Positions 297 to 35,396 of a stretch of 64,000 nt of DNA are shown here, piece after piece (position 1 is the stretch's first letter; every line of letters starts with the position of its first letter). The notes beneath the pieces were generated by a model. It was not told where the DNA came from and made no database searches. It was given only the letters and a program-made list of their open reading frames with translations. The DNA lies in NCBI GenBank assembly GCA_038087875.1, contig CM075979.1, forward strand, positions 17,174,001 through 17,238,000, read 5' to 3'. Source of the stretch: Malacoraja senta. Lineage: Eukaryota. The position numbers and the translations under genes were made by a program.

Positions 297-3200
297 CTTA
301 AATGTATTAAAGACAAACAAAATGTTAATAAAAAATCTTTAAATGCAAACCATAAACTTGCTAATTTAATATGTGGTCAATTATTAAAATGTCTTCCATT
401 TGTACAATACCATAAATTAAACCTTTATAGAATAAAATTTGAAAAACAGATGTTTGATAAGAAAGCATTGCTGCATCATCTGAAAGGGTTTACTCTACAA
501 TGCTCCAAGAAATATATATTCCCAAGAAGAACAGGAACAGGTGATGGGAAGCAAGGGGTAAAGAGACAAAACATTTCCAATTTCTGCAAATCTCAAAGGC
601 TATTTAAACAATGTTAAAAATATGATTATTCCCTGAAGATTTAGTTCCTGTATTTTACTGGGAGATGAGAAGATCATATGACTGTGAAACCATAATCTAT
701 TTGGAAGATGCTGAAATTCAGGCAAATTTAATGGCAGCACATCATAAAAGTATTTTTCATTCCTGGGAACTGCATAGGTCAGCAAAGTGGCCAATAGTCT
801 GACCGTAAAGCATATGTGAAAGATTACATTGGCTGATACCCACAATGGGTGTTGAGGGGGGCGGTGACCTTGATGCACAGACATAAGGAGTAGAGAAGGG
901 CATTGCAGAATGTCAAGAAGTTGCAGAGAAAATCGCATGATTGTAGAGCGGGAGAAATTACAATAGGTTCACATGAGGAGAAAGGAAACAGCTCCATCCA
1001 CACGTCCTGCCCCACAAACAACACTCACAAATAGCTGGATCTGGCAGCTCCAATCTCACTTTAGCTGCTGCCATTCACAGATCCTGGGAAAAGTTCAGAT
1101 GGATCTCAAAATCCAAGGAAAAGAACCTGGTTTAAACATTATAACCTCTTATTCTCTTCTCTGGTGGGATCATTCATGAATAAACTGGAAATAATGCCAG
1201 TAGATTGATTTTCACGTTTTGTAACATTTGTTCATTTGCCATTTGTGGGAGATAACAAAATGGAAAGGATGGAAGTAAGCTTCCTAACTGTGAAATCATA
1301 TCTAAACTTGAAGCCATCACCTTCCCCTCCCTGCCACAAGCTCAGATATCCATCCACCACTCCCACCTTCAGCGGATCAAGTCCTGATTTGATTGGGCCT
1401 TCTCTCTCTCCCAACCCCAGGAATCATCCTACTTCCTCTTTGTACCTCTAGTATCTTTGCTTTGTACATTTCATAAGGGAAGGAAACAGCGCCACAGCCA
1501 ATTAGTAACACCTTACAACATGGTGAATGAATATATAGGCCTTTTAGTTCAAAGGTTTCAACGGTCTGTTTATTGTCACGTGTACCAATTAAGGTATGTT
1601 GATTCAACCAGAAAGTCGGGTTGTAGTGGCATTCATGTGTTATTTTCAAAAATCAAAATTCAAAATTCTAGGTTATTAATGAATCAGTCTCAAATCGATT
1701 TCACTCACTTTATTCTCATACTCAGAATTATGTGCCGGTAATTTCAGCTGGAAACTGCTCTCATTAATAAATGATGGTAGAAATTCGAAACAATTCTCAC
1801 TTTAAACTAATTTATTTAAATTTGTAAACAAAGACACAAAGTGCTGGAGTAATACAGCGGGTCATAGAAACATAGAAAAATAGGTGCAGGAGTAAGCCAT
1901 TCGGCCCTTCGAGCCATTCAATATGATCCTGGTCAAGCAGCATCTCTAGAGAACATGGATGGGTGATGTTTTGGGTCAGGAACGGCCCGGCCTGAAACTT
2001 CACCTATCCACATTCTCCAGAGGTGTTGCCAGACCAGCTGAATTACTCCAGCACTTTGTGTCTTCTTTTGTAAACCAGCATCTACAGTTCCTAGTTTCTC
2101 TATTCTTTAGGTTTGTAGTTACTTTCAAAATAATCATAGTAATATTTTGTGGATTCTGATGAATTAAGGAGAAAAATCTTAACTTAGTAATTATTTTGCA
2201 AATGCTTTTTCAGCACATTGTAACTTTTATGAATTCAAACTCACCACTGTAAAATGCTTACTAATCTTGACATTGCACAATTTAGTCAAACTAGGACACA
2301 AATTGTTCAGAGTGAATGCATTGCTTAACTTACCAAAGCAACCTACTTTGGGCTACACACTAGTTTCAGATCTGACTGCAGGGGGCATAACTGTGCTAGC
2401 ATAGGTGATTTTTCACCACTAACCCTGAAAAGTAGCCCTGGTGGTGTTCGCCCTTGGGTCATGGATGAATAAACTGAAAGATTAAAAAGTACAAAGGAAA
2501 CACCTCGCTTGACAATTGTGACATTGTGAAACTCACTATCTTTGGTGGTGTATTTGATTGTTTCAAGATTAAAATATTGAGCACACCATGATAAACAGTC
2601 ACAAGGTGGGCAGAAGCATTACTTCGTTTTTTTCTCTCTTAAGCCTACTTAATTTAAATGTTATTTATCATTCCTAATTACTTCTGCCAAATGTAAATAA
2701 AATTCACAGTACAGAATATATTTTGTTCCAAACACCATGGAATGCATTCTGTTCAGTCTACCATTAACAAAATAACAACTGTTCTATATGGTTAACAAAA
2801 ACAGGAAACATAAAAACACAAGCCAGAATGTAACATGTCACATGAGAACTAATGTGATCTCAGTTATTTAGTTGGCACAGCAATCATTAAAATTCATTCA
2901 GAAATGTGTAGTACTTATAGTCATCTACAATGCTTCACATCTTTGGAGAATATATATCATACTTTTAACAGCCAGGCTTTACCTAATTGCAATTAACACT
3001 GAGCGTATATTGCGAAGTATCACAGAAAAATTATATTGAGGAATGAGGCAACTCATTGTAGATTACAACTTTTCAAATACTTTAAAAATATGGTGAGGGT
3101 TACACTGCTACCCAATTCGAGCAACATGTTTTCACCATCTCGTTGAAAATATATTTGATGGCAACAGTTAACATATTTTGATAATACATCAATGTCTTCA

Positions 3201-3599
3201 GGAAATTACAAATATTTTGTCATTCACATTGATGCCACATTACCAAACTGAATTTGAAAAATATTTAACATGAATATTAAAATAGTTTGAAAAATATTAT
3301 CTTATTGCTGTCTTTTCTCTGCAGTAAATATCAGAAAATAAGGCATATATTTTTATCCATATAAAATTAATTGTTAGCAAAATTATTGATACATGTTCAT
3401 TTGAAATTTCATATTCCAGGCATTAAGGCACAGATGCATTATCTAGTTAGAATTAGAATTTGATCCCATTGCAACAGGTCTATACAGCAAGCACAGAATG
3501 AACAGGAAAGGGTGGGGCTGTTTTCATTAGTACAAATGATGGGAGATTTGATCGATTTAAAAATCACAAAATTTAACAATGTATACAAAAAAAGACCCA

Positions 3600-4445
3600 T
3601 ATCCTTCAATAGAAAGTCTGTATCTGGACTTTCAAAAAGCCTTTAACAAGGTCCCACACAAGAGATTAGTGTGCAAAATTAGAGCACATGGTATTGGGGG
3701 CAGGGTATTGACATGGATAGATAACTGGTTGGCAGACAGGAAGCAAAGAGTAGGAATTAACGGGTCCTTTTCAGAATGGCAGGCAGGGACTTGTGGGGTG
3801 CCACAAGGCTCGGTGCTGGGACCACAGTTGTTTTACAATATATATTAACGATTTAGACGAAGGAATTAAATGTAACATCTCTAAGTTTGCGGATGACACA
3901 AAGCTGGGTGGCAGTGTGAAACAGTGTTTCCACTTTGAAGGAAATTACCCGACATTCTGGTTGTCTTCGGGTAATTTTAGGGAAATTAAATAATTTCGGG
4001 AAATTTCCCGGCCGGGTAAGCCTTCCCCAACTGCGCATGTGCGACTGCCGCCCCAACTGCACACTCGCGGGGAGACGCAAAGGGATTTGAGGGAAATTTT
4101 TTTTTTGACCATCCGCACCTGCACAGTTGTGGGAGGCCCGTCAGCCGCGCACAATTGAAAATGGCGCCGGTGACGCGGTAGGGACACAAAATGACGCCGA
4201 CTCCTTGCGCATGCGCAGTGGGCCCGGTATCTGCGCGTGCGCAGTTGGGGCAGCAGTCGCACATGCGCAGTTGGGGAAGGCTTAAATTTCAGGAAATACC
4301 ATCAAATTCCAGGAAATTTGGGAGTCTATTTCCGGGGAAAAAAAATGGAGGTGTGGAAGCACTGTGAAAGCACAGGTGTGAGCTGCAAGGAGGATGCTAT
4401 GAGGCTGCAGGGTGACTTGGATAGGTTGGGAGAGTGTGCAGGAGA
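3600..4445 (+). mobile_element. CR1 LINE reverse-transcriptase fragment, split by a MITE
   Basis: Translations YLDFQKAFNKVPHKRL, GVPQGSVLGP and SKFADDTKLGG; continues after 4375 (EDAMRLQGDLDRLGE). Confidence 0.9.
3922..4364. mobile_element. 443-bp MITE with CAGTG termini and 5-bp TSD
   Basis: 12-bp TIR cagtgtttccac / gtggaagcactg (1 mismatch); TGAAA at 3917-3921 and 4365-4369; 44-bp internal inverted repeat 4017-4060 / 4241-4284. Confidence 0.8.
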
Positions 4446-4479
4446 GAAACAAAGTTTAACATTTTAAATTGATGATTGA

Positions 4480-4711
4480 TGAAAACTATGGTATCCCAAT
4501 TTCGCATCCATTCCCTACACACTAGGGGCAATTTATAAAGGCCAACTAACCTGCAAACCTGCATGTCATTGGATGTGGGAGAAAACCAGAGCTCCTCGAA
4601 GAAATCCATGCAGTCACAGGGAGAACATGCAGACTCCACACAGCAGCACCTGAGGCCAGAATTGTAGCTAGGTCTTTGGTGCTGTGAGGCTGCAGCTCTA
4701 CTAGCTGCATC
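4480..4711 (-). mobile_element. Degenerate tRNA-head SINE
   Basis: Reverse complement resembles the SINE at 59474-59793 (tgcagctagtagagctgcagcctcacagc...ttctccctgtgactgcatgg). Confidence 0.7.
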
Positions 4712-4716
4712 ATCAT

Positions 4717-5763
4717 GTAGGTATGTTACAATACTTACCTTCACCAGTGCTGTAATTCTGCCACTGGCCGTGTGCGCGATTTTGGCGCCTTTAAGGGGGG
4801 GGGGCGGGCTTAAAACGCGGGTTTCTCCTACCTTGTCCTGAATTATATTTCGTTGGAGTACAAGCGTTTGCTGAAAAATCGTTCCTAGGGGCGTTTTGTG
4901 AATTTTTATTTTTATTAAATCGACAATGTCAGCGCTGGAGTCACTTTAAAATCAGCTCCTGAAGCCGTCAACGCCGATAACGGGGACGGATTTCACGTAC
5001 GGGACAGGTAAACGAAAGTGGTTTATTTAAATGTATAAAAATGCTTCTTAAGAAGCCTTTAATTCACATTTTTTCTTGCGAAACGGTGATGTTATTCCCC
5101 GAACTAACGGCAGTATTTTTCATGCCAATACGGGGTTAAATTCACCGCAAATGAACGTTCCAAAAGATCGCGTTCCAGAAATCCTCACTCACAAGATGAT
5201 TTAAATGCCCATTAATTTACAGGTATTAAACATTCAATTCCTTCCATTTGGCCTGTAAGTTCATGACAATGAGATTTAAAAATTATGTTATATTGTGAAT
5301 TCTTGTGTGAATATTATTTGGACACTTAAGCTATTTAAAAATGTTAATCTATTCTTAAGAAATTGATAGATGTTTAGATCTAGTAATTGAATTTTGTAAT
5401 TAGCTACATTTAGGTAACTAACTAATTATATGCTTTAATTTCATGTCTTCTAAGTAAGATTGTTTCATATTTGTTTCAGAATGCTTCAATCTATAATAAC
5501 TGAAAATTTCTTTCAGTTCTCTTAATTTTTAAGAAAGTTATGGGCTTTTAACTGTCCTCGATCACAGCTTTTGTGTTAAGTCAATGGAAAAGCAATAGGG
5601 AACAAGATGCTAATTTCCGAGTATGAAAACGGCCATAACCTTTTTTAATACTGAAGATATGAAAGTGAATTAGGTGTCAAATTAAACTTCTTTTTATGCT
5701 TTATCTGATGGGATAAATTGCAGACTTTATTTTTAAAATCTCAAAATATTGTAACATTGCTAC
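4717..5763. mobile_element. Non-autonomous DNA transposon, copy 1 (GTAG...CTAC termini, 5-bp TSD)
   Basis: 15-bp TIR gtaggtatgttacaa / ttgtaacattgctac (2 mismatches); ATCAT at 4712-4716 and 5764-5768; collinear with 9807-10849; no ORF. Confidence 0.85.
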
Positions 5764-6675
5764 ATCATGTATGATGATATATTTTCAAGTCAGGTTGATA
5801 TGTGACTTGGAGGGCATTACCTGGTGGTGGTGTTCCAATACATTTATTGCCCTTATCCTTCTAGTTAGTAGAAGTTGTGTGTTTAGAAGGTGTTGTCTAA
5901 TGAGTCTCGGTGAGTTGCCACAGTGCATCCTGCAGATGGTACCAACTGCTGCTGCTACTGTGCATTGGTAGTGGAGTGAGTGAATATTTATGTATGGGGA
6001 GCCTATCAAGCAGGATGCCAAGCTTGAAAGTGATATAATTGGCTCCAGGAATAGGATTTAAATTTTAACAAAGAAAAATATGCACATTTGAGGGCAGAGT
6101 TTACTTTGAATGACTAAAAATACATTGAAATATTTGACAGGCAATGACTGGCACTTACGGGAATCATGCATAAACTGTTAGAAAATTATTACTTTATACA
6201 CAAAAAAAGAAAGGAAATAAGTGATTCATGCATGACTAAGGAAAATTAAAGATAGCATTATATCAAAGTACGAGATTTATCAAATTGCCAGAAATAGTAG
6301 TAGCCTGACAATTGGGACTTTTAAAACACCATAAAGTAGACCAAAGAAATTAGCTAAAGATAAAATATGCAAGTAGACAGGTGAGAAACAAAAACAGACT
6401 GTAAGATCCTCTATGAGTATGTAAAAAAGGAAAAGGACAAATGAGGGTCCCTTGGAAATGGGAGAATTTACAACAGGGAATAAGGAAATGGCAAAGAAGT
6501 CAAAGTCTTTGCAGAAGACAAAAAATCTTGCCAAAAATATTGGATAACCAAAAATGTAGCAAGAATGAGGAATCGAAGGAAATAAATACTAGTCAAGAAG
6601 TTGAAGGAAATTCGTATGTCAAGATGTAATGTAATATGTTAACATAACTCCTATGTATCTCCAGCTCAAACATGC

Positions 6676-6812
6676 CTCATCATCATCCTTAAGTGGTTGT
6701 TCTCCCTTCTCATGAAAGCGCATCAATACTTGCTTCATATCTTGGTGTTTTCCAGCATCTTCTGCTATCCCTGCAGTGGCAGGAGATGCTACCTTTTGTT
6801 TCTTCATGTCAT
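6676..6812 (-). CDS. IFTAP: IFTAP internal coding exon, equivalent to human exon 3 (GC donor predicted)
   Basis: Acceptor ccttgtttccag at 6813; phase 1 start fits the exon 2 end; open frame DDMKKQKVASPATAGIAEDAGKHQDMKQVLMRFHEKGEQPLKDDDE; phase 0 end at GAG|GCATGT joins exon 4 in frame. Weak protein similarity. Confidence 0.55.
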
Positions 6813-7738
6813 CTGGAAACAAGGACACCATATTTAGATAGAAACTTTAAAACGACTTTTGTTCACAAGTCATGAAGCTTGGCATTATGTTACATCTAGA
6901 ACGACACAATACATCTTTTATTCGATATGAAGAAGAAACAGACAAAATCTATACTCCGAATCATATAAAGTTCTACGTCAGGATTTTTGTGTGGATTTCT
7001 TAATGCAATATCAGTGGAGTCAGTGTTTTGCTGCATCATTAATAAAGAAAATCTCCACACTCATATTGCCTGCTGCCACTTATGAAAAGGAAACCAAATT
7101 CAACTCTCCTCGTCAAGAGTCTTATAACATTATTTATGCTGCAGATTGTAAGATATTAGTAATTTCTCCAATAACAGCAATTGCAGAAAGGGTAGAAATT
7201 CAGTGGGGAGAAAGAAAAGGCATTAGATGCCCATTTTTTGTGCAGAACTATAAAATTTGAGCACAGCTACAAAAAGAATAAGCAAAACCAAAACACTCAT
7301 GGACTGTTTGCATTCTATCAAAAGTCAAGATTCAACCAAAGTTCCTGTTCATTTTCCATTAGCCATTCCGATTATTTTTAATTCAAATTAAAAGTTTAAA
7401 AGTTGCTTTTCACAATAGACAGATAAACCCTTCTAGAATTAGACTCACTATCAAGAAAATATCTATACTATTACTAAAACTCTCATCTTGTCCTCTTCCG
7501 GTTTGCATTGTTTAATAAATTTGTGCAAAAACGGAACCCTATATCGCTAGGATTTTTTCCGCCACCTTACTCGCCGTTCTCTTCTGCTCCAAGCGCACCA
7601 AGTTTTGTTCCGATCGGTGACATATTACAAAAGTTATTGGTCTGTTATTCGCCGAGACGGTGACACCCCTTCCGGGACCCGCTGTCAATCACCGGCGGGG
7701 AGAATAAAACTGAAGGAGCGGAGTGCACTCGGGGGATG

Positions 7739-7899
7739 CTGTGTTCGCGGGCGGAGGCTGACTGTGTTCGCGGGCGGGGGCCGGCTGTGTTCGCGGGCGG
7801 GGGCTGGCTGTGTTCGCGGGCGGGGGCCGGCTGTGTTCGCGGGCGGGGGCCGGCTGTGTTCGCGGGCGGGGGCCGGCTGTGTTCGCGGGCGGGGGCTGT
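7739..7899. repeat. 23-bp GC-rich minisatellite, about 7 copies
   Basis: Unit tgtgttcgcgggcgggggccggc repeated in tandem. Confidence 0.95.
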
Positions 7900-8039
7900 G
7901 AGCGCGACAGGCGCTGGGGACCGGAGCATCTGAGTGTGTCCGGAGCCGCGTCCTGGAGCAGGTGAGTGCGGTCGGAGCCAGGGCCGGGAGCCGTTGAGTG
8001 CGGTCGGAGCCGGGGCCAGGAACCGGTGAGCCCACTCAC

Positions 8040-8427
8040 CCCCTCCCCTAGAACTCCCCTCCCCTACATCCCCCCTCACCTACACGCCCCCCTCCCCTAC
8101 ACGCCCCCCCTCCTCCCCTACACCCCCCCTCCCCTACACCCCCTCTCCCCTACATGCCCCCTTCCCTACACCCCCACAGCCCCCCCTCCCCCACAGCACC
8201 CCCTCCCCCACAGCCCCCCTCCTCCCTCACAGCCCCCCACCTCCCCCACAGCACCCCTCCTCCCCCACAGCACCCCCTACCCCACCCACACCCTACCCCC
8301 CCACACACCCCCTCCCCCACCACACCCCCTCCCCCACCACTCACCCCCTCCACCATACACCCTCCTCCCCCAAAAACACCCCCTCCCCCACTCCACCCCT
8401 CCCACACACACCCCTCCCTCACCTCCC
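8040..8427. repeat. C-rich low-complexity tract
   Basis: Imperfect ccccctccccacag/cccctacac repeats; source of spurious Pro-rich and Gly-rich ORFs. Confidence 0.9.
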
Positions 8428-9039
8428 CTAGTTTACACAACTTATTACATCCAAATAATCAGAAAATAAACTCTTTCTTTACATTCTCAATGATTCATCT
8501 TCCTCCCACCCAATTAGATCCTTATAATAAGATAACCTCCAAATCCAGGTGATCTTAACCTTTTTTTCCTAACCTTCTATTCTCTATGCAATTACCATTA
8601 ATTTGTTTCCTCTCAATTAAAATGACAATGGAAATAAGAATATAAGGGTCAAATTGCCTCCTTTGCTGTAAAGATGATAATTAGGAATAACACAAAATAG
8701 GCTAAAATATGTTATCAACTGTGTTAGTTAATTGCAAATTTGCCCTGGCAACATGCAAATAAATTTGAGCAGAAACAATGGGAAGAACTCACTTTTCAGA
8801 AAGTTTGCAGTTTTAGTCACAAAGATTTCTTGCCATAAGAAATCATGGGCACTCATTCCTTGGACAAAGTGGGGACATTGGTCTGGGAAAGAATGATAAC
8901 TCTGATTTGCTTATGCTGCCTATTGATTTGAATGATTATGCCAAAACACTCAACATCCAACCCCACTTAAAGCCATTAACGGGGATGAACTCATCAGGAA
9001 CTCACAGAATGTTAACATTCACTGGAAGGAACACTTGGA

Positions 9040-9260
9040 AGACCTCCTTAACTACGATTCTGTCTTGGTCCACCAAGTCAAGCTGGATCTCCTGTTTGCT
9101 AGCCAATTTAACCCCTTTTCCCATTCCTATACTGACCTTTCTGTTTTTGGCCTCCTCTGTTGCCACACACAAACATGAGGAACAGCACCTCATATTTTGC
9201 TTGGGTAGCCTACAACCTAATGATACAAATGTTGCATTCTACAATTTTAGGTAACTAATC
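9040..9260 (+). mobile_element. Penelope-like element 3' fragment
   Basis: Translation KHEEQHLIFCLGSLQPNDTNVAFYNFR matches the C-terminus of the GIY-YIG copy at 41848-42342. Confidence 0.7.
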
Positions 9261-9264
9261 TACA

Positions 9265-11190
9265 AACAAGATACAAGATACATTTATTTGTCACATGTGC
9301 CAGTTGGCACAGTGAAATGTGATCACCATACAGCCATACAATAAAATAAAGAACACAACACAAGATAGAGTTCAACATAAAACATCCCCACAAAGCAAAA
9401 TCAAAAGTTTCCCACTGTGAGGGAAGGCACCAAAGTCAGTCATCTTCCTCTAATGTTCTAGATGTTCACCCGTGGTTGGGGCCTCCGGAGGCCTCCGCAG
9501 TCGCCGCTACGGGCAGCCCGCCGCTCAGGCCCGCTCGCCGGGATGTTGGAACTCCGACGTCGGAACGGGAGGCCAACCTCAGCGGCTTGGACCTCCAAAT
9601 CAGCTGCTTCCCACCGGAGTCCGCGGCTCCCGAAGTCCCCAGGCCGCGCTGGGCGGAGATTCAACGCTGGCGGCCCTCGGCAAAGGGCCCCAGGGACTCC
9701 GCGATGTCGGTCAGCGCCGCCCGCGCTGGGAGATCCGTGAACCACAGCCCCGCGATGTTGGAGCAGCGGGCCCAACGCTCCGGAGCTTCAAACGGCGATC
9801 CAGGAAGTAGGTATGTTACAAAACTTACCTTCAGTCGCGCTGTAATTCTGCCACTGGCCGTGTGCGCGATTTTGGCGCCTTTAAGGGGGGGGCGGGGTTA
9901 AAACGCGGTTTCTCCTCCCTTGTCCTGGAAATATTTTGTTGGAGTACAAACCTTGGCTGACAAAATCGTTCCTACCGGCGTATTGTGAATTTTTTATTTT
10001 TATTAAATCGTCAATGTCAGCGCTACAGTCATTTTAAAAGCTGCTCCTGAAGCGTCAACGCCGATAACGGGGACGGATTTCACACAATGGACAGGTAAAC
10101 GAAAGTGCTTTCTTTAAATGTATAAAAGTGCTTCTTAAGAAGCCTTTAATTCACATTTTGTCATGCGACACGGTGATTTTATTCCCCGAATTAACGGCAG
10201 TATTTTTCATGCCAATACGGGGTTAAATTCACCGCAAATGAACGTTCCAAAAGATCGCGTTCCAGTAATCCTCACTCGCAAGATGAATTTAATGCCCATT
10301 AATTTACAGGTATTAAACATTCAATTCCTTTCATTTGGCCTGTAAATTCATGAAAATTAGATTTAAAAAGTATGTTATATTGTGAATTATTGTGTGAATG
10401 TTATTTGGACACTTAGGCTATTTAAAAATGTTAATCTATTCTTAAGAAATTGATAGATGTTTAGATCTAGTAATTGAATTTTGTAATTAGCTACAATTAG
10501 GTAACTAACTAATTATATGCTTTACTTTCATGTCTTCGAAGTAAGATTGTTTCATATTTGTTTCAGAATGCTTCAATCTATAATACCTGAAAATTTCTTT
10601 CAGTTATCATAATTTTTAAGAAAGTTATGGGCTTTTAACTGTCCTCGATCACAGCTTTAGTGTTAAGTCAATGGAAAAGCAATAGGGAACTAGATGCTAA
10701 TTTCTGAGTATGATAATGACCATAACCTTTTTAATACTGAAGATATGAAAGTGAATTAAGTGTCAAATTAAACTTCTTTTTATGCTTTATCTGATGGGAT
10801 AAATTGCAGACTTTATTTTTTAAATCTCAAAATTTTGTAACATTGCTACAGGAAGGCATCGCCCACTCCGCGGTGAATCCGGCGCCGCGCCGCCGCTGCC
10901 GAAGCTCTGGTCCGGTCCCCGGTCTCCGGCAGGAAAGGCCGCTCCGATCCAGTTGGTAGGTCGCGAGGAGGGGGGCGAGGAGGGGGGCGAGGACGCGACT
11001 CGGAGAAATAGTCGCATCCTCGCCAGGAAGCGACTGGGAAGCGGTTTCCCCCCTTACCCCTCCCCCCTCCCCAACATAGAAAAACGAAAGAATCTCCAAA
11101 ACAAAACTATTTAGACAAACTAAAATTTTTAAAAGGATGGAAAAAAACAGACAGGCTGTAGGCAGAGGCGCCTTCAATGCAGCGCCCCTA
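9265..11190 (-). mobile_element. Non-autonomous GC-rich retroposon, interrupted by a DNA transposon
   Basis: Shares aacatcc...cactgtg...ggaaggcaccaaagtc...tgttcacccgtgg segment and acggtttcccccttacccc motif with copies at 13902, 26777 and 44760; split at 9807-10849. Confidence 0.7.
9807..10849. mobile_element. Non-autonomous DNA transposon, copy 2 (same family as 4717-5763)
   Basis: Same TIRs; AGGAA at 9802-9806 and 10850-10854. Confidence 0.85.
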
Positions 11191-11719
11191 GTGTTCAAGG
11201 GTAGTGAACAACCCTTCCTTCCCACCCATCCCCCTCTTCCCCGTGCCCCACCTGGATTCACATCCATTTCTCCCCTTCCCCCTTCCCTTCCAACGTTCTT
11301 TCCTCTGGCTTTACAATTTGTACATCTTCTATCCTTACCTCATACATTTTGTCTTGTATCCTTACCTCATACATACATCTCTGGCCTTTGTCCAACAATT
11401 TACCTACCAAAATCCATGCTCATCTGTATCCACGCATCACTTGCCTGGCTTTGCCCTGCCCCCACTCTCTTCCAGCTTTCTCTGCTCAAATCCCCCCCCC
11501 CCCCCTTCCCCTCACCACAATCAGTCAGAAGAGGTGTCCCGACCTGAAACATCACTTATCCATGTTATCCAGAGATGCTGAGTTACTCCAGCACTTCTTG
11601 TCTTTCCTTGACATGAGCCCCCTTGATTCCATCGCACGTCACCCTGAGAGCATTTCTACCATTTCAGATTGACAAATAGTTGAAAAACCCATATCACAAC
11701 AAAAAAATAACAAGCCTTG

Positions 11720-12850
11720 AGAGCAGAATCCCCGCTAAAATCCTAAAATTCAGTGGTAAAGAGTTCCAGATAGCAATCCACAATCTCATTGTCATCACCT
11801 AGAAAGAGCAGGGCAGACCAAGGGAGCTTACAGATGCCGTAATTGTAGCAGTGGGTAACCACAGAGGAATCTTCCTCCTGTCTACGACAATGAAAGTCAT
11901 TGCCAAGGTCCTTTTGAACCATCTGCTCTGAGAGGCTGAAGAGCTGCATCTGAGTTATAGTGAGGTTTACATCTATCTGTGGGCACAATGGACATAATCT
12001 TCATGCAAAGCCTTTGATACTAACCCTCAAGAGGGACTGTAGAACACACTCCTCAAGTTCAGCTATGCACAGAAATTCAATTCAATTCTTATTTTAGCTT
12101 TATAACAATATGGAGGCTGTGGTACGCATCAATTGGTCTACGTTTGATCTCAGGATGGCCTGCATTGTTCCCCCAACACTTTTCTCAATCTTCCCCTTCA
12201 ACATTGCACCTCACCTTCAATAAAGTTAGATGGAGCTAATCTTCGGAACTATTAGAAAACTATTCACAATCTAAAGATCACTCCAACACCTGGAGTCAAG
12301 GTACAATGTACAGAAAAAGCATATGTTTGCGCACACTGATGGTTGCAAACCATCATAGACTCATGAACTTAAGCACATGAGAGGATTAGCTGTACCCACA
12401 CATCCACAAGGCAAAAGGTCCTCGACCAACCTGTCCCCACTGCATCACAATAGCCTCCAACAATAAAAAATCATCATGAGGCTCTGGAAAAGATGGACTG
12501 CTTCCTGTATCTCAAATGCCAACTCTCTGGGAAGGCAGGCATCAGTGAGGAAATTCAACACCAGTTCATTTTGGTCAAATGAGGAAAAGATATTTGAAAA
12601 TTACAACCTCAACATGCCACAAAACGCATGGTCTGAAGAAGAGATCATGCCCATTCTTCAGGGTGGTCAACAGTTGACATCTCAAAGCACTGGATGAAAT
12701 ATCACAAACACCGCCTCTGATAAATCTTCCAAATTAATTGGAAAGATAATCAACCCAACATCACTGTTCCCCTGAGGCCAAAATCCCCCAGCATCTAGGC
12801 TGTTACATTCAGACCACTACATTTGTACACCCAAGATCAGACCCCATTAC
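11720..12850 (+). mobile_element. Highly degenerate RTE-clade LINE
   Basis: Broken frames GNHRGIFLLSTTMKVIAKVLLNHL, GTMDIIF and KAFDT resemble RTE reverse transcriptase. Confidence 0.6.
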
Positions 12851-13079
12851 TGTTAAATCTGATCTATTTTAGATTCCAGTCCACAGCCTTAATGAGCAGG
12901 TTTGTTCAAAAACTGTTAATTATGGATGATAGTGGCTCTTAAAGATAGCGGAGTCAGGGGATATGGGGAGAAGGCAGGAACGGGGTACTGATTGGGGATG
13001 ATCAGCCATGATCACATTGAATGGCGGTGCTGGCTCGAAGGGCCGAATGACCTATTCCTGCACCTATTGTCTGTTGTCT

Positions 13080-13803
13080 TGATAAAGCTGAATTATGTTA
13101 AAAATATAAGAAAAGCTTACAGCTTATATTTAGTCTCAAATCAGGCTTTTCTCCAGTAGAATAATACAGAAAGGCAAGTTAAGTTGCCTCAGGTTTTGGG
13201 GTATTGAGATAATAAATACCATAACATTGTCTCCCAAGTGAGGAAGTGACAGAGAAAGAAACAGCTAGTCACATCTTTGAAGTAAGATGCCATAAGACAA
13301 ATGGCCAATGTTTATGGGGGAGGAGGTGATGAGAGAGGAACCAGGGAAGTGGAAAGATAAGATGCCATAAACCAAATGGCCTATGTTTATGAGGGACCAA
13401 GTGACAGAGAGGAAGTAGCGAAAGAGCTAGGGTGATCTCTTTTAAGATAAAATGACCTAAGACAAATGGCCAATGTTTTCAGTATATCTTGTACCATGTA
13501 AACAAAAGGCCTTTGATGTGATGCATTCTGTGGAAACCTTTTCCTGTACCTCTGACCATGACTAATGTCTGTGGAATGTGCTAATGTGACAAAGAAACAC
13601 TATATAATGCGATGTAATTCTGTTGTTCAGAGAAGGGGACCGAGGACAGTCGAGTGTCTACATTGGTCACTTAGCTGGAATTCTCGCTCCCTTCCATCGG
13701 CCGATGTTAAGTAAAGTTTTGAACTGGTCTACCAAACAGTTTGTGTGGTGTCTGTTTATTGAGAAGCGAACCTGGTTTAGTAGTTATAAAAGTAACTTTT
13801 TCA
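13080..13803 (+). mobile_element. Solo LTR of an endogenous retrovirus or LTR element
   Basis: TG...CA ends (tgataaag / cttttca); 4-bp TSD GTCT at 13076-13079 and 13804-13807, inside a CR1 (ctattgt)n tail; three agacaaatggccaatgttt-like repeats; TATATAA 13601-13607; AGTAAA 13710-13715. Confidence 0.8.
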
Positions 13804-13901
13804 GTCTATTGTCTATAGATTTTAGATAGGCACATGGATATGCCATGGATGGAGAGATATGGATCATGTGCAGGCAGATGAGATTAATTTATCATGGCAT
13901 C

Positions 13902-14718
13902 ATACAATACAATACAATACAATACGGTTTTATTCGTCACATTGCACATAAAGTGCAAGTGAAATGAATTTGCCAGCAGCGGTACAATAATAAACAACAC
14001 ACAATACACAATAAAAATTTAACACAAACATCCACCACAGCATTCATCACTGTGGTGCAAGGCACAAAATTTGGCCAGTCCTCCTCCATTTTCCCCCGTG
14101 GTCGGGACCTCAACCCTCCGCAGCCGTCGCTGCGGGCGTCCAGAAGTGCAGACAGGTAAAAGTCCAGATAAGTCCAGAGTCGGCTCTTCCCCACCGGAGA
14201 CCGCGGCTTTAGGTTGGTGTAGGCCGCAGGCCGGCGGTCGGTGATATAAAGTTCCCGCCGCGCCGCAGCCAGAAGCACCGCAGACTGCAGGGCCGGTGGT
14301 CAAAGCTCCCCTCCAGGGGTCCCCGGCGAGGGACCCCACTCCTGATGGTAAGTCCATGCCGGGCCCGCGGTAGAAGTTGGCCGCGGGCCGGCAGTGGTGG
14401 CTTCTTTTTCCCCCGGGTCCCCCACGAGGGATCCCAGGCTGCGGACGCCGCGCCAGCTGGAGCTCTGCAGACAGCGGCTTCAGGCTGCCGGCTGTCGCGG
14501 GCCAACGAAATGGAGCGCTCCCCTCCGGCGAGCCCCAGCGAGGGCTCGCCCACTCCACGCCGAGAGTCCGCTCTGCGCCCGCCGCTGAAGCCCCAGGCGC
14601 GTCTCCGGGAAAGGCCGCCCAATCCTTGCTGTTAGGCCACGGGGGAGGCAACATGGAAAAAGTCGCCTCTCTGTGGAGGAGGCGACCGAAACGGTTTCCC
14701 CCTTACCCCCCCATACCT
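13902..14718 (-). mobile_element. Non-autonomous GC-rich retroposon, 5'-truncated, with (ATACA)n tail
   Basis: Microsatellite tail at 13902-13925; family homology as above. Confidence 0.7.
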
Positions 14719-14720
14719 AC

Positions 14721-14949
14721 ACATCTAAATCTAATTTTCTCAACTTTGAAAGTTCCAATTTAGCTAGACTTAGTAGCGTCTTGGTGGCAAGGTGGGAAAG
14801 TGAAGTTGAGGTAAATGTTCGACCATGGTCTTATCGATTGAAGAAGCAGGTCCATGAAAGTGTATGGGCCTCTTCTTTTATTGACATTTTCCAGCCATCG
14901 TTTTTGAATGCCACATCTCTATTTGTAAAGTTATGCCAGTGTTTTGGAC
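14721..14949. repeat. Left arm of a 229-bp inverted duplication (partner 15742-15970)
   Basis: Base-by-base comparison gives about 4 mismatches in 229 bp. Confidence 0.95.
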
Positions 14950-15053
14950 ATGTGGTGTACTCTTCATTGTTCTATATTCTATGGACAGCGATGCTAACAT
15001 CTTTTGAATGGATAAAAAGAGATTTTTGTTTTTATCCAATCTGACGGGCTTAC

Positions 15054-15156
15054 CTTTTTTAAGATGTATAAATGATTCTAGAAATTCCTCATATGTTTGT
15101 TCATGGCTCCTGCAGAACCTTTCTAAAACATCACAGGTTATTTCTTCCTTCTCCAT
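15054..15156 (-). CDS. IFTAP: IFTAP first coding exon (exon spans 15054-15198)
   Basis: MEKEEITCDVLERFCRSHEQTYEEFLESFIHLKK resembles human [33 protein letters not shown] (recalled); acceptor tttttccatttcag, donor AAG|GTAAGC; head-to-head synteny with RAG2. Confidence 0.9.
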
Positions 15157-15741
15157 TGTTTATGATCCTGACAACAATGGCATGTCTGATGCATTATTCT
15201 GAAATGGAAAAAAGTATAGTTAGAGATATAGCATTCAATAATTTCAAACAAAAAAACGAATTAATTTTAAGTAAGTGTAAGGTGAAGGGTTGTATCCATT
15301 CTCATCCTATTATTTCTAAACATTGATAATTCAGGAATTATGGAGAAACATATGTATACTAAAGTATAGAAATTAAATAAAACTAGTGGTAAATAAAAAA
15401 AAGTATGAACAATTGATATGCCCTTATCTTTAGAGAGCATGAATGAAAAGGGAAAGAATTTATGTGACTGTTGTCTGAAAGTTTAGATAGAATCAGATTT
15501 AGAGTATCCAGTTAAGTTTGAGACACTGTTTCTCAGGAAGGATATATTGAGCTATGTTGGTCTTTTGTGAGTTAAAGGGGAGAGGAAACAGGGGAGAGTG
15601 CATACAGATTTACCAGAATGATATAGGGATGAAAACAGGTGGCACCACTGAAGCTTATCTTCTTTGACTAAAGATTAGAGGTGATCTAATTGATGTATCT
15701 GAGATAAGTAAAGATGTGCTGTGTTTTCTCCTATGGGGAAA

Positions 15742-15970
15742 GTCCAAAACACTGGCATAACTTTACAAATAGAGATGTGGCATTCAAAAACGATGGCTGG
15801 AAAATGTCCTTAAAAGAAGAGGCCCATACACTTTCATGGACCTGCTTCTTCAATCGATAAGACCATGGTCGAACATTTACCTCAACTTCACTTTCCCACC
15901 TTGCCACCAAGACGCTACTAACTCTAGCTAAATTGGAACTTTCAGAGTTGAGAAAATTAGATTTAGATGT
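15742..15970. repeat. Right arm of the inverted duplication; part of an old CR1 3' remnant (about 15420-15970)
   Basis: Reverse complement of 14721-14949. Confidence 0.95.
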
Positions 15971-16204
15971 TAAATAAGGTATTACAGGTAACAGATTGAT
16001 GCCACTGAAATAAAGATATAGTTCAGCCATGATCAAGCTGAATGCAGCAGCAAGCTCCACGGTTTCTATGAGGCAGAGTTTCATCTATGAAATAATACTT
16101 CCAATAATATAGCACTCTCTAAATAGCACTTCCAGACTTGTGTCACGTTAAACCATAGTTCCCTTGTTTAAAAACTTAAATGTACCACCAACTAAACAAA
16201 GCAA

Positions 16205-19200
16205 ACATCCAGGTTTATGTGTTACATACACATACAAGATGTGCAGTGAAATGAAAGTGCCAATGCCTGCGGATTGTGCAAAAAACTACAGAACAGAATC
16301 AGTAATTACATATTAGAAAACCCCCCAGCAATTTTTAAGAAGACACAACATAACAGTAAATTGGTACAGTAAATTAGTCCCTGGTGAGATAAGAGTGTAC
16401 AGTTCTAATGGCCTGTGGGAAGAAACTCCGTCTCATCCTCTCTGTTTTCACAGAATGACAGCAGAGGCGTAGCAGCTGGAACAGACAGTTGCTGGGGTGG
16501 TAGGGGTCCCCCATAATGTTGCTGGCTCTGGATCTGCACCTCTGATGTATAGGTCCTGCAGGAGGGCGAGTGTAGTTCCCATAGTGCGTTCGGCCGAACG
16601 CACTACTCTGCAAAGCCTTCTTGTCCTGGGCAGATCAGTTCCCAAACCAGATTGTGATGTTGCCGGACAAGATGCTTTCTACAGCTGCTGAGTAGAAGCA
16701 CTGAAGGATCCTCAGAGACCCTGAATTTCCTCAGCTGCCTGAGGTAGTAAAGGCGCTGTCTTGCCTTACTCACCGTGTGATGTCCATGTCAGATCCTCTG
16801 TGATGTGGACTCCCAAGTATTTAAAGCAGCTCACCCTGTCCACAGTAGCCCCATTTATCTTCAGTGGCATATACGTCCTCGGATGTTGTGCCTTCCTAAG
16901 GTCCACGATCAGCTCCTTCGTTTTTTTGACATTCAAGAGGAGGCTGTTGTCCTAACGCCAGAGTGCCAGATTAGCCACCTCTTCCCGGTAGGCCTTCTCA
17001 TTATTATCGGAGATCAGGCCCACCACCACAGTGTCGTCAGCAAACTTGATTATAGTTGGAGCTGAATCTGGCCACACAGTCATGTATGTACAGGGAGTAC
17101 AGTAGGGGACTGAGGACGCAACCCTGGGGGGATCCTGTGTTCAGGGTGAGGGTCTTCGATGTATTTCCTTCCATCTTGACTACCTGGGGCCTGGCGGTGA
17201 GGAAGTCCAGGACCCAGGTATACAGAGGAGTGTTAAGCCCCAATTCCAGCAGCTTCTCAGCAAGTCTGGTGGGGACTATCATGTTGAAGGCTGAACTGTA
17301 GTCAATGAACAGCATCCTCACATAGCTCCCCTTCTGGCTGTCAAGGTGAGAGAGAGCGGTATGCAGGACCTGGGAGACCGCATCGTCCGTGGATCTGTTC
17401 GGACGGTATGCGAACTGTAGTGGGTCCATGTTGTGAGGGAGGAAGGCGCCGATGTGGTTCTTGACCAGCCTCTCGAAGCATTTCATGACTACCGAGGTGA
17501 GGGCCACCGGTCGGTAATCATTCAAACAAGCTGGAGAGGCATTCTTTGGTATAGGTACAATGATGGATCTTTTGACGCAGGCAGGGACCACGGACTTGGC
17601 CAGGGAGAGGTTGAATATTGTAGTGAGCACTGGAGCTAGCTGAGTAGCACAAAACTTAAGTACTCGCCCAGATATGCCATCTGGGCCTACAGCTTTCCTC
17701 GTGTTCACACGTGTCAGAGCCCTCCTCACGTCGTGCTCGGACGAGAATGTGTGCCCATCCACAGCGGAGGACCTCCCTCCAGCCTCGCTAGCCAGCGCGC
17801 TGGCAGTGTTGTTGTTAGCCGGCAAGCTAGGGGTGATGTTGCCCGTCTCGAAACGTGCGTAGAAAGAGTTCAGGTCATCAGCTAGGGAGGTGCCAGCACT
17901 TCCTGTAGAGGGGGGGCTGCTCCGGTAGTTAGTTATAGTCCGTAGCCCCTGCCAAAGGCCTCTGGTGTCCTGCTGCTCCATCTGCGACTCCATCCTGTCC
18001 CTGTACCTCCTTTTTGCGTCCTTCACCGCCCTTCGCAGTCGGTAGGACTCTACCTTGTAGACGTCCATATTTCTGGATGCCAGGCCAGAGTTGTAAGCAG
18101 CGGTGCGAGCATTCAAGGCAACGCAAATGGTCCTGCCCACCCAGAGTGTTTGATTAGGGAAGATGCTAACCCTTACCGTGGGGACGATGTGATCGGCTAT
18201 TGTTGCAATGACGTCCGTGACCGCTTCCGCGAACTCACTGACGTCCCTGGAACTTGCTTGGAACATATTCCAGTCAACATCGGTCAGTGCATCCTGCAGC
18301 ATGGCCTCTGACTGGTCAGACCACCGCTTTACGTCCCTCGTCACTGTCGCTTCCCGTACTATTTGTTGTTTATACTCCGGCAGCAGGAAAATAGCAGTGT
18401 GATCAGATTTTCCAAAAGGAGGGAGTGAAACGGCCTTGTAGCCTTTCTTGAACGGCGTATAGCAGTGGTCCAAAGTTCTTTCCCCCCTGGTGACACACGT
18501 GATGTGTTGGCAGAAGTTAGGCATGACGTTTTTGAGATTTGATTTATTAAAATCTCCAGCCACCACCATAGCCGCATCTGGGTTCTTGTTTTGGTGTCGA
18601 CATAGCACATCGTGTAGGGCCGGTAGTGCCACTTCTGTATCCGCATGTGCTGGAATGTAGACGGCAGTGATGATCACTGAGCTGAACTCACGGGGAAGGT
18701 AGAATGGACGGCATGAGATCGGCAGATGCTCCAGGTCCGGCGAGCAGGAACGAGAAAGCGTCTTAATATTTCCAGGGTTGCACCAGTTATTATTGGTCAA
18801 GGAGCAGACTCCTCCACCCTTGGATTTCCCAGATTCTTCGATTCTGTCAGCACGGTAAACAGTGAAGGACAGTTGGGCAGATTATCTGATCCGGCACCAG
18901 CGAGGTCAGCCATGTCTCAGTCAGACAGAGGATGTTGCAGTCCCTTATGTCCCGCTGGAATCTGATCCTCGCCCTGAGGTCATCCAGCTTGTTCTCCAGG
19001 GACTGGACGTTCGCCAGAAGAATGCTGAGCAGAGGTGAACGGAAGGCTTGGGCTCTCAGCCTATTCCGAATCCGCCCCCCCACCCCCGCTTGCCCCGATG
19101 TTTTCTCCGGGTTTTTCTAGGAGCCCCGCTCCCATTGTTGTTGCCTCTGTTGATCTCTGCCGGCCACGCTGGATCGGTGAGTACAGTGTTTAAAAAGTGT

Positions 19201-19362
19201 CCGGTTGCGCTAAAGTTTTGTTTTACAAGAGTTTCCCGGTCGTACGTTGTTAATGCTAGAGTGTTAGTACTTAGAAATAAATTTAAAACGAACATGCAAG
19301 TTAAAAATACGCAGTTTCCGCGGAGCTACCACAACGGCGACTGGAACCGGCCACGCCATCTT
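16205..19362 (-). mobile_element. Near full-length Rex1/Babar-clade LINE (APE + RT), disrupted
   Basis: 587-aa ORF 18800-17037 with CRPFYLPREFS, GDFN, TLDHCYT, SDH, NDYRPVALTS and GSPQGCVLSPLLYSLY; frameshift at the KFADD motif and a nearby in-frame stop; N- and C-terminal parts in other frames. Confidence 0.92.
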
Positions 19363-19685
19363 TGGAATTTGCACAGACCTCGAGTAACCCATTCATTAAC
19401 AACTCATTCTGAAGAACGGTCTCAACCCGAAACGTCACCCATTCCTTCTATCCAGAGATGCTGCCTGTCCCGCTGAGTTACTCCAGCATTTTGTGTCCAT
19501 CTATTGACTAGATATTCTTTCAATTCATAATCACTGAGTGGGAACTATTCCGAACATAACTGATTGTTTGATATCATAATGTGACATTACACAAACAGGA
19601 TAGTAAAGGAGTAAACAAATTCATGATCAATTTGAATAATTTGTACATTAGATATACAGGGGATAATGTCTGAGAAGTTATCCTC

Positions 19686-21577
19686 AAACCCGTCTCACTG
19701 TGCGAGCTGACCCACGAGGTACCCCGAGTTTAAAACAAATTTAACTCGTGGTAATCACGTACAATTAACGTAGCGGGAACGTCGGAACTCGTGGACGCAA
19801 CTTAGCGACTCTTGGCGCTAATGGCAGGTACCCTGTGAAACTTGTTAACTCTTGAAAAAGTTCAAACATGTTTAAACTTTTCCACGAGTAAAATGTACTC
19901 TTGAGGTTAAAATTTGAAACATTTAAACTCATTGTAAGAACATAGTGGCCGCTTGCGTTTACCTTTGTGACTCGTGAGTCTACCGTGGGAACTCTTTTTA
20001 GAAACAATAATCAGGGACAGAAATATCAGTTACTTGGATAAGTATGGATCAGTTAAGGAACACCAACATAGACTTTTTAAAGACAAATTCTGCTTAACAA
20101 AGTTAAGCAAGTTATTGATAAGGTGACAGAGTGGGTTGAAAAGAAAAAATTGCTTGAAGTTTATATATTGATTTTGTGTATTTGGGACTGAGCTCACAAC
20201 CTTAAGACAAACCAGTATTGAGGAACAGCGTGAGAACATTTTATGACACTTCATGGCAGCCAACATGAGGTTTGCCAGTCACGTCCAGAAGCCATCTCTA
20301 CCAGTGCTGTTGAAGAAGACAGGGTTGTGTTCACCTCTCCTGCACCCCTGTTCCGTAGGACAACACCAACTCTTTCATTATGCGGATGTTAAAGGCTGGG
20401 TTTTATTCTCAAGCCATGATGCCAGATTCCCGATCTCTTTACTGAACTTTACTGAATCAAAGGGTTCTATAGGAGGTGCTGCCTCAAAAAGGCAGCCAGC
20501 ATTGTCATGGACCCACACTACCCTGGCCATGCTCTCATTTCATTCCTGCTTTCACCCCCCATCACCACTCAGTTATACAGAACTGCAGCCTGCTTTGCAA
20601 TCTGAATATGGAGACGGCCGTCTTAGTGGAGCAGAATCACCATTTGACGAAGGGACAGACCTGGGAGATTAGTTCCGTTATCCCTCTGATGTTCATTCTT
20701 ATCTGTATGTTTATGTTGTTTTTTGCCTGTTTGATCATATTTTAGTATCTTTTGGATACTCCCACTTTTTCTAATAGCTTAAAGTGTTGAAAAGCTTTTT
20801 ACTAATCCGTTTGATTCTCACTGTTTGTTTACTTCATTGCACAATAAAAGAGAGTTCTTTGCTATCAAGATCAAATTGATGTCTGGAAGTCTTCATTTTA
20901 ATATCACTACAAAGTCTCATGACTTGAATGTAATATTCCTTTCATCATAAAACACAAAATAGAGGAAGGCAAAATATATTCACATCTTATTCTCACAATC
21001 ATTTGTGAGAGTTAAGGACTCTGGTGCCTCATATGCTGTGCTTTTTAAATGTTAGAAAGTGTCACCTCTCTGTAGATCAGAAAATAAAACAAACAGCACG
21101 GTGAATGAGAAACAAAGTCTTTATTAATCTTGTTCAATATCATAAACACTTTTTTGCACATATTGAGAAAAGGAGCACCACAGCAAACAACACAATGGTC
21201 TGAAAAAGGGCTTCTCAAACATGCAAATCAACAAATGAAGCACAAATAAAAGTATTTCCACTATATACTAATTCAGCTGAGAAATGCACAAGCCTAAATT
21301 CAGGCAATAAAAGAGACAATGCAATGCAATGACAAGTTTTGAGATCTACCATCAGATAAGCAGATGCATTGTTGCCTCAAGATTAACGGGAGAGGAACTT
21401 GGTACACTCGGGAGACGAACTTGGAACATCGCAGAAATGAGAAGTAAACGGCAAACTTAGACATACCCGTGGGAACTCGGTTAAACTCTTGATCATAAAC
21501 TTGGAGTCTCGTACGCAACCACGAGTCTTTCACTCGGGGTCACTCGTGGGTCAACTCGCACAGTGAGACAGGGATTT
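19686..21577. mobile_element. PIF/Harbinger-family non-autonomous element, copy 1
   Basis: TIR core gtctcactgtgcgag(c/t)tgacccacgag at both ends; both terminal regions collinear with 29660-30998; TSD not clear. Confidence 0.8.
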
Positions 21578-21578
21578 C

Positions 21579-21910
21579 AGGGTGGCACAATGACACAGCT
21601 GTTAGAGCTGTTGCCTCACAGCACCAAAGACCCGGGTTCAAACGTGACCTCGAGTGCTGTCGGTGTGGAATTTACACGTTCTCCCTATGACCGCCTACGT
21701 TTCCTCTGGATGCTCTGGTTTCTTTCAACATCCCAAAGACATGTGGGTTTGAACGTTAATTGGCTTCCGTATATTGCCCCAAATCTGTAGGGAGTGGATA
21801 AGAAGGGGGTTAAAGGGGAACTAGCATAAACGGGTGATCAATGGCTGGATGGACACGAGAGGCCGAATGGCCTGTTTCCATGCTGCATCTCTAAATTAAG
21901 CTAAATAAAA
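21579..21910 (+). mobile_element. tRNA-head SINE, diverged
   Basis: B-box-like gggttcaaac, body gttctccc..tgacc, ctaaa-type tail; homologous to 59474-59793. Confidence 0.75.
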
Positions 21911-21954
21911 GAACTAATTTACAAAAATTGCTACAGATGAAAAGTAAAAACACA

Positions 21955-22960
21955 TGAACCAGGAGTAGGAATAAGCCAATTGCCTCCTGAAGCCTTCACC
22001 TTCACGGTTGATCCAAGCTTGACCCTCACACCACTTAACCTTGCTCCCCAAACTCCTCAGCGTCCTTAAGATTCAAGTGTCTGTCAGACTCTGCCTTGAA
22101 TATATCAATGACTGGATATATAGCTCCCTGGGGTCCAGAATTTCAAAGATTCACGAAATTTATAGAAGAAATTCTTCCTCATCTCCTTCATAAATGAGTA
22201 GTATCCCCTTATCTCAAATTGGACTCCCCAGTTCCTGATATCTGTGCTAAAAGAAACCTAACTAGTTTTCATCTATTAATTCCCTTCAAATATCTTGTGG
22301 TTCAATAAGTTCACTAATCATTCTTCTAAATTACAATAAGCATAGGCACAACCTGCTTAACTTCTTTACCTGGGTCGACTCCATAATTCCAGAGATTAAC
22401 CTAGTGACATTCTCTATAAAGCTTCCAATGCATATGTAGTATTTTTTTAAATAAAGATATTAAATCTATATGCAATTATCTAGCTGCAGTGTGAAGTACC
22501 AGAGTTGCAAGGTAGCAGCAAAGATCGATCTTCCATTATTCTATGACCCAACATATCATTAACCTTCCCAATTTCCTCCGGTATGCCTTTGTTTCACAGC
22601 AAGAACCCCCAGATCTCTTTCTATCATGTCATTTTGTAGTCTCAATCTGTTTTTTTTTTTTTTTTTCTCATTCTTTCTTCCAAAGTAGATTCCTTCACAG
22701 TTCACAATTCCCCACATTATAGTCCATCTACCAAATTCTTGCACACTCAATTAAGCTATATGTATATAGTCGGAAACTCTAATATGTCATACTCACTACT
22801 TGCAAACTTACCTACCTTTGAATCATCAGCAAATTTGGCTACAATACACTGGGTCCCTTCATCTAAGTTATTAACATAGATTATTAATAGTTGAAGCCTT
22901 AGGTCTAATCCTTGTGAAATCTCTTTAGGTGCTGATTGCCAATTCAAAGATAACCCATTT
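21955..22960 (-). mobile_element. Degenerate CR1 LINE 3' portion
   Basis: Reverse frames IYVNNLDEG and KFADDSKVG; CR1 3' tail motif at 21955-22010. Confidence 0.7.
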
Positions 22961-35020: not shown

Positions 35021-35396
35021 AAGGGCCTGTCCCATTTTCCAGAGTAATTCACGAATTCTCCTGAGTTTATCAAACTCGCAGATTGTTCGTAACGAGTCCG
35101 TAGGAGGCCGTAGGAGTCCGTGGATATATCATAGCAGCTCGTTATGCCAGCCGTAGGTACTCGGGGCTATGTTTTTACTCGTGGACATTAATTCATCAGG
35201 CTGGAAAAAAACATTCCGACTTACCTGATGCCCCGAGTGCCTACAGCTGGCATAACGAGCCGCTACAATATATCCACGGACTCCTACGGCCTCCTACGGA
35301 CTCGTTACGAACATTCTGCAAGTTTGAAAACTCGGGAAAATTCGTGAATAACTCAGGAGAATTTGTGAATAACTCTGGAAAGTGGGACAGGCCCTT
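35021..35396. mobile_element. Near-palindromic Harbinger-type MITE
   Basis: aagggcctgtccca / tgggacaggccctt termini; 3-bp TSD ACA (35018-35020, 35397-35399); long internal inverted arms. Confidence 0.9.

Follow-up and report, generated by a model that had tools for sequence, protein, structure and literature searches.

The window, a stretch of 64,000 nucleotides from the skate Malacoraja senta, carries exons 1–4 of the gene IFTAP, and the second of these exons, which holds the translation start, is enclosed by two long and nearly perfect inverted copies of one sequence. How two such copies came to lie on either side of a single exon, and whether the stem that they could form in the pre-mRNA would alter the output of the gene, are the questions raised by this locus.

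Both a repeat search and a direct comparison reveal that positions 14721–14949 and 15742–15970 are reverse complements over 229 nt, with 98% complementarity, a spacer of 792 nt between them, and a sharp break in complementarity at all four ends. Exactly four mismatches are found by direct comparison (at 14746, 14769, 14881, and 14882), bearing out an earlier, sequence-only reading that had described a near-perfect 229-bp inverted duplication with about four mismatches. Two further elements of that description, a 792-bp loop that includes exon 2 (15054–15198) and a left arm ending 104 nt from the exon 2 donor, are likewise in agreement with our data. Chance cannot account for an inverted repeat of 229 nt. 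The left arm is located in intron 2 and follows the donor of exon 2, the right arm lies in intron 1, 543 nt upstream of the acceptor (neither arm being assigned a strand), and the loop between them (14950–15741, minus strand) consists of 104 nt of intron 2, exon 2 itself, and the 543 nt that end intron 1. This loop is single copy and orthologous in related species. No third copy of the arm is found in the 64-kb window by either blastn or a scan of its whole length, nor are other copies present in two orthologous skate loci. Target duplications and microhomology, when tested at each arm separately, do not exceed chance; an 8-mer, TGGCATCA, is found at 13895 and, inverted, at 15997, with a chance expectation of ~0.1. 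An open frame of 76 codons that runs across the arm belongs to no Pfam family, and all four differences between the arms alter an amino acid in it; this frame has been treated as a chance occurrence.

Two other repeats were observed in the same introns. In the bin 14898–15004, the summed contig depth is 5–8 times the single-copy level in three species (20 vs. 2.5, 61 vs. 12, and 311 vs. 38), and thus a short piece of a low-copy repeat must be present inside this bin. Intron 1 contains a second inverted repeat (35067–35167 and 35230–35330), with 101-nt arms that are 92% complementary and a 62-nt spacer. Its sole Rfam match, WsnRNA46, is far under the threshold (31 bits vs. 65), and it is possibly a small fold-back element.

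The assignment of the gene is based on the protein family as well as on a transcript. Exon 2 (15054–15198, minus strand) starts after an acceptor (...ttccatttcag/) at 15198 and ends before a donor (/gtaagc) at 15054, and its 34 codons match the Pfam family PF17722, IFTAP (E = 6e-11, 43.1 bits vs. a gathering cut-off of 29.3), covering positions 11–44 of that family, the best-conserved part of the protein. In L003, a transcript contig of a relative, exons 1, 2, 3, and 4 are spliced in this order, and the identity to skate IFTAP exons is 96–100%. The non-coding exon 1 is found at 50533–50721 (minus strand), where bases 1–192 of the transcript align at 96%, and intron 1 is thus ~35.3 kb long. Exon 3 (6675–6812, minus strand) includes at 6807 the in-frame ATG (MKKQKV) that had been noticed in the sequence-only reading, and it is joined in the transcript to exon 4 (225–298). 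The donor of intron 3 (6673–6674, minus strand) is GC rather than GT (GAG/GCATGT). Since this GC donor is kept in Amblyraja radiata and Leucoraja erinacea, intron 3 is, to judge from its conservation, a genuine GC–AG intron. Exons 2–4 and their splice sites are intact in the window. In L. erinacea, the RAG2 gene adjoins IFTAP, and exon 1 of the latter (4208–4399 in the orthologous locus L002) lies within the range of RAG2 (1495–10301) on the opposite strand. Intron 2 (6813–15053) is ~8.2 kb long here, compared to ~1.6 kb in A. radiata, and both a segment of 740 nt (13080–13819) and ~4.9 kb within 6815–12005 are without a counterpart in A. radiata or L. erinacea.

Exon 2 had been regarded as the only start exon of the gene, a view that holds insofar as the usable ATG (15156–15154) lies there, but the ancestral ATG of the same exon (15183–15181) is closed in Malacoraja senta by a TAA at codon 8 (15162–15160). 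The codon at this position is CAA (Gln8) in A. radiata, L. erinacea, and two further organisms represented by contigs (organisms C and I), and the TAA is confirmed by a short-read contig of the same species. The start of the protein has the form MP(A/L)..GSQ.ME... in sharks, L. erinacea, and A. radiata; the IFTAP protein of L. erinacea begins with MPLLSGSQTMEKEE..., and the ancestral start reads MPLLSGSQ.... Because of the stop codon, the ancestral ATG is reduced in Malacoraja senta to the opening of an upstream open reading frame of seven codons, and translation, as read from the genomic sequence, would have to start at the ATG at 15156. In organism C, the ancestral ATG has independently been changed to ATA (at 15181). 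In view of these two changes, the first nine residues of IFTAP seem to be dispensable in skates. Additionally, the segment 45045–45071 (minus strand) encodes an exact match to MPRLERRSQ, the first nine residues of isoform X1 of L. erinacea IFTAP, and is probably an alternative coding first exon; its frame would meet the TAA of exon 2 in Malacoraja senta.

The origin of the repeat can be approached by comparison with the orthologous introns of other skates, as had been suggested in the sequence-only reading. The loci of A. radiata (L001) and L. erinacea (L002) were reached via their annotated IFTAP proteins, along a route that led from the exon 2 peptide to shark IFTAP, then to a skate cluster, and from there to the two loci; a search for contigs of relatives with the read-through open reading frame 14878–15156 returned no candidates. 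In both species the right arm is present and the left arm is absent. The right arm is found in its orthologous context (9224–9437 in L001 of A. radiata and 22552–22765 in L002 of L. erinacea), whereas on the side of intron 2 the segment equivalent to 13820–13903 is joined directly to the sequence from 14949 onward. Not only the left arm but also a retroposon that precedes it (13906–14720, minus strand) is missing there. The empty site reads ...TTGGCATC/ATGTGGTGTAC... (also ...TTGGCATC/ATGTGGTG...), that is ...GGCATC/ATGTGG..., in both relatives, and the corresponding junctions in Malacoraja senta are ...GGCATCAT/ACAATACAAT... on the left and ...TTTTGGAC/ATGTGGTG... on the right. Since positions 13903–13905 of the window abut 14950 in this empty site, the retroposon and the left arm share a single insertion point, and together they form one insertion of ~1,045 nt that was accompanied by no loss of target sequence. 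A target-site duplication of 2 nt, AT, flanks the insertion (13904–13905 on the left and 14950–14951 on the right, no strand being assigned), or one of 3 nt, CAT, if positions 13903 and 14949 are included. For organisms C and I, single-copy contigs span the loop together with its exon 2, the right arm, and the region beyond it, and the homology stops exactly at 14949.

A four-way alignment establishes which of the arms served as the source. Compared with the relatives, the two arms of Malacoraja senta have four substitutions and two indels (11 nt and 1 nt) in common. As these lineage-specific changes are found in both, the left arm was copied from the right arm of the same lineage, the latter being ancestral and the former a derived, inverted copy of 15742–15970. 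The left arm has the ancestral letter at three of the four mismatches; the derived letters are those of the right arm at 15809–15810 (a single dinucleotide change) and at 15945, and that of the left arm at 14769. The presence of ancestral letters in the left arm excludes, on the evidence of the alignment, a very recent gene conversion across these sites. The divergence between the arms is 1.3% when counted in events and 1.75% when counted in letters, while the substitution divergence over 14950–16180 is 3.4% from A. radiata and 3.9% from L. erinacea, and these two species differ from each other by 1.7%. Judged by these values, the age of the copy is roughly one-third to one-half that of the split from Amblyraja and Leucoraja, an estimate that is based on few differences and has a wide interval. 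The opinion that the arms represent a recent local inverted copy and not two independent insertions is thus upheld as far as the local copy is concerned, in accord with the lineage-specific letters shared by the arms, but the divergence of 1.3–1.75% indicates that the copy is not very recent.

The same letters bear on the question of whether the left arm, or even the whole insertion, could be an artefact of the assembly. Among the short-read contigs listed for organism A, which is the same species and possibly the same sample, the segment 14791–14897 is uncovered and the junction 14720/14721 is not seen, nor are the variants of the left arm, as might be expected of an artefact; the coverage is low (depth 2.5–4), and such holes prove nothing. 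Three of these contigs (14920–15314, 15314–15771, and 15742–16249) come together in a 30-mer where the arm borders the loop, the kind of branching in the contig graph that a true inverted repeat should give, its inner end having two continuations. Furthermore, one contig crosses the junction 14949/14950 with 30 nt of the arm. At three of the four mismatches, the left arm retains letters of A. radiata and L. erinacea that have since been lost from the right arm, and an artefact copied from the right arm as it is today could not have them. An artefact is therefore very improbable.

The equal length and the sharp ends of the arms could also be explained by two opposite insertions of one young transposon family, or by a fold-back or MITE element with terminal repeats of 229 nt. 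Such an origin is extremely unlikely, since the right arm and its surroundings (15005–16181) are at single-copy depth in three species at a likeness of at least 85%, and since no pile-up of contigs of a repeat family is found on the left arm, the only bin wholly inside of which (14791–14897) has zero depth. The absence of further copies from the window and from the two orthologous loci, the orthology of the right arm in the relatives, and the lineage-specific indels that it shares with the left arm are also at odds with a transposon. Moreover, the putative element would have to contain an exon conserved among vertebrates, its outer limits (14720/15971) have no target duplication, and no hammerhead or other Rfam family is present. 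Searches of 10000–22000 and 13400–16400 against Rfam gave no match, with neither a hammerhead nor a Penelope signature.

The single-copy depth of 15005–16181 also lends no support to the earlier assignment of the right arm to an old CR1 remnant. A LINE does lie nearby (~16213–19100, minus strand), and the right arm was considered as a part of it, or of a CR1 element, but the LINE ends at ~16213 and the intervening segment 15971–16181 is single copy, and this candidate is not supported. The LINE itself includes an open reading frame for a reverse transcriptase (17037–18800, Pfam RVT_1, E = 4e-22), preceded by an endonuclease-like N-terminal stretch with a weak Pfam match (E = 0.14). Reads of its family indicate a tail of the (GACTT)n type, and the family is present in high copy in three species and is abundant in polyA RNA of organism I.

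The retroposon at 13906–14720 is G+C-rich. Its 3' end (13906–13930) bears AATAAA and, as a tail, (ATTGT)4. At the 5' side the element breaks off at ~14717–14720, where the three letters TAC (14718–14720) could not be placed. Summed contig depths for its family range from thousands to hundreds of thousands in three skate species, with a bias to the 3' end. RNA reads of the family run past 14712/14717 with other letters, and the segment is thus a 5'-truncated member of a retroposon family that is expressed and present in high copy. The 5' truncation and the tail are LINE-like; the open reading frame of the element (211 aa) has no match in Pfam or the Atlas, either to a LINE clade or to any other entry, and no second copy of the element was found in the sequences gathered for comparison. 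The sequence-only reading had noted that the left arm starts where a retroposon is truncated, and the end of the element at ~14717–14720 does indeed abut the arm. From this nucleotide-exact adjacency we infer that the retroposon and the left arm arose together. Two points go beyond that reading, namely the direction of copying, from the right arm to the left as judged by the alignment, and the tie of the copy to the insertion of the retroposon, as judged by the shared insertion point.

We consider it quite probable that the inverted repeat was left behind by one complex insertion in this skate lineage, completed by a fold-back route, and that the stem around the start exon is its by-product. 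The process would begin with a cut of the target in intron 2 of IFTAP at ...GGCATC/ATGTGG..., 104 nt downstream of exon 2, after which the 3'-OH of the plus strand at ...GGCATCAT would prime reverse transcription on the (AUUGU)n tail. The retroposon cDNA would reach ~14717–14720, which would yield the 5'-truncated end. The reciprocal (right) end of the break, starting at 14950, would be resected, and the resulting 3' single strand would fold back at 15742 and prime DNA synthesis up to 15970. Finally, the extended end would be released and joined to the end of the retroposon cDNA. The layout of the locus is consistent with these steps, with the left arm positioned between 14720 and 14950 and with its source, 15742–15970, at a distance of 792–1,021 nt on the reciprocal side. 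What follows the minus-strand 3' end at 14950 is the exact complement of the same strand from 15742 to 15970, which is the product expected of fold-back priming.

A similar remodelling of the ends of a double-strand break has been modelled for human L1, where some insertions carry an inverted duplication on the reciprocal break end, placed between the 5' end of the element and the reciprocal flank, with the target duplication kept (bioRxiv 10.1101/2024.12.14.628481, Figure 4A/D/E). The insertion in IFTAP resembles the human cases in having a 5'-truncated element, a 3' tail at the primary end, and an inverted copy of flanking sequence just before the reciprocal flank, as well as a source that lies on the reciprocal side within the range of resection and a target-site duplication that is preserved. 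Several differences weigh against the fold-back proposal or at least set this locus apart. The microhomology at the fold-back junction is only 0–1 nt, since the C at 14949 fits both sides and the next positions are unpaired, compared to 2 nt in L1, and both the loop (792 nt) and the copied tract (229 nt) far exceed the small hairpins of L1 in size. The element is not an L1, its tail being (ATTGT)n and not poly(A), and the retroposon is without a match to any LINE clade. In addition, the event described here took place in the germline and has long been kept in a cartilaginous fish. Twin priming, which creates the 5' inversions of L1, is also comparable in that an inversion arises at the 5' side of a truncated insertion during the processing of the second break end; there, however, the inverted piece is element sequence primed on element RNA, whereas here it is host intron DNA from 792 nt away.

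The position of the arm exactly at the 5' end of the element, and the three unplaced letters TAC at the junction, would also be accounted for by a template switch at the truncated end, in which a reverse transcriptase or repair polymerase would copy the plus-strand DNA or an antisense RNA from 15970 to 15742, the product being joined at 14950. The template jumping of LINE reverse transcriptases leads to the ends of templates and is not known to lead to internal sites, which counts against such a switch. Copying would have to start internally, on the very strand that would be removed, and not exposed, when the reciprocal end is resected, and no microhomology is found at 14720/15971. This explanation is unlikely.

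It can also be supposed that two separate events happened to abut, with an inverted copy made first and a retroposon inserted at its edge, or in the reverse order. Small inverted duplications without a mobile element are indeed common in humans, where 277 such events outside mobile-element insertions, with a median size of 284 bp and mostly with 1–15 bp of microhomology, have been attributed to replicative errors (PMC12350158). The copy in IFTAP belongs to the same size class and has the same local inverted layout, but it abuts the 5' end of a retroposon. Two events would require two independent breaks at the same nucleotide, although the relatives have one empty site and a single duplication of 2–3 nt flanks the composite, and we regard this course as decidedly unlikely. 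Both the template switch and the two abutting events are possible explanations that fit less well than the fold-back route.

Although the fold-back route is concerned with DNA only, its product may also matter for the RNA of IFTAP. The minimum-energy fold computed for the pre-mRNA stretch is the full stem of 229 bp, a trivial result for a repeat of this kind. Long perfect duplexes are substrates of ADAR, and the predicted stem would be expected to be one as well and to promote a certain amount of exon 2 skipping or back-splicing. The arrangement is like that of inverted intronic repeats, for example pairs of Alu elements, around circularised or skipped exons (PMC4201285), with complementary stretches near the splice sites in both introns that flank one exon. 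Here, however, the arms are not members of a repeat family but a unique duplication of local sequence, and both their length and their degree of complementarity greatly exceed what is needed. An exon of 145 nt is short for a single-exon circle, which counts against a circle of exon 2.

It seems doubtful on present evidence, although plausible in silico, that exon 2 is looped out by the stem at a rate of any consequence, resulting in an mRNA with exon 1 joined to exon 3 and translated from MKKQKV, in a circle of exon 2, or in heavy editing. The predicted stem of 229 bp is only 104 and 543 nt away from the splice sites, exon 3 has an in-frame ATG, and inverted repeats of 30–40 nt suffice for the circularisation of exons in reporters (PMC4201285). 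On the other hand, the repeat has long been retained even though the exon that it encloses encodes the best-conserved part of the protein. Together with the intact exons 2–4 and the conservation of the splice sites, among them the GC donor of intron 3, this persistence speaks against a drastic loss of the normal mRNA. A strongly harmful effect of the repeat on IFTAP is likewise unlikely, as it is old enough to have gathered three changes. Assembled transcripts of relatives that lack the left arm (L003, P0024-26) contain exon 2. In polyA RNA of organism I, a species that also has no left arm, 0 reads were found on exon 2 in 6% of the run, a result that carries little information.

A stronger form of the proposal can be put forward as a speculation. 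A clamp of 229 bp of double-stranded RNA, created in one step, might measurably redirect the output of IFTAP, a cilia gene, to a circle of exon 2, to an N-terminally truncated protein started at MKKQKV, or to hyper-edited RNA retained in the nucleus, and it may act together with the lineage-specific TAA at the ancestral start. We hold this to be improbable; if true, it would provide a natural case in which a by-product of the repair of a retroelement insertion became a new regulator of splicing. If there is an effect of any kind on the RNA of exon 2, the comparison of three species, with and without the left arm, would amount to a natural experiment on back-splicing, skipping, and editing.

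When only the structure of the DNA is considered, the repeat is a structural scar of modest importance. Nevertheless, the locus represents a clean germline case from outside the mammals, resolved to the nucleotide, of a retroelement insertion in which neighbouring host DNA would have been copied in inverted orientation, a process hitherto documented mainly in experiments with L1 and in cancer genomes. It suggests that inverted copies linked to retroposons can become fixed and persist inside a gene, and that a long intronic inverted repeat around an exon can arise from one retroelement insertion, with no need for two copies of a transposon.
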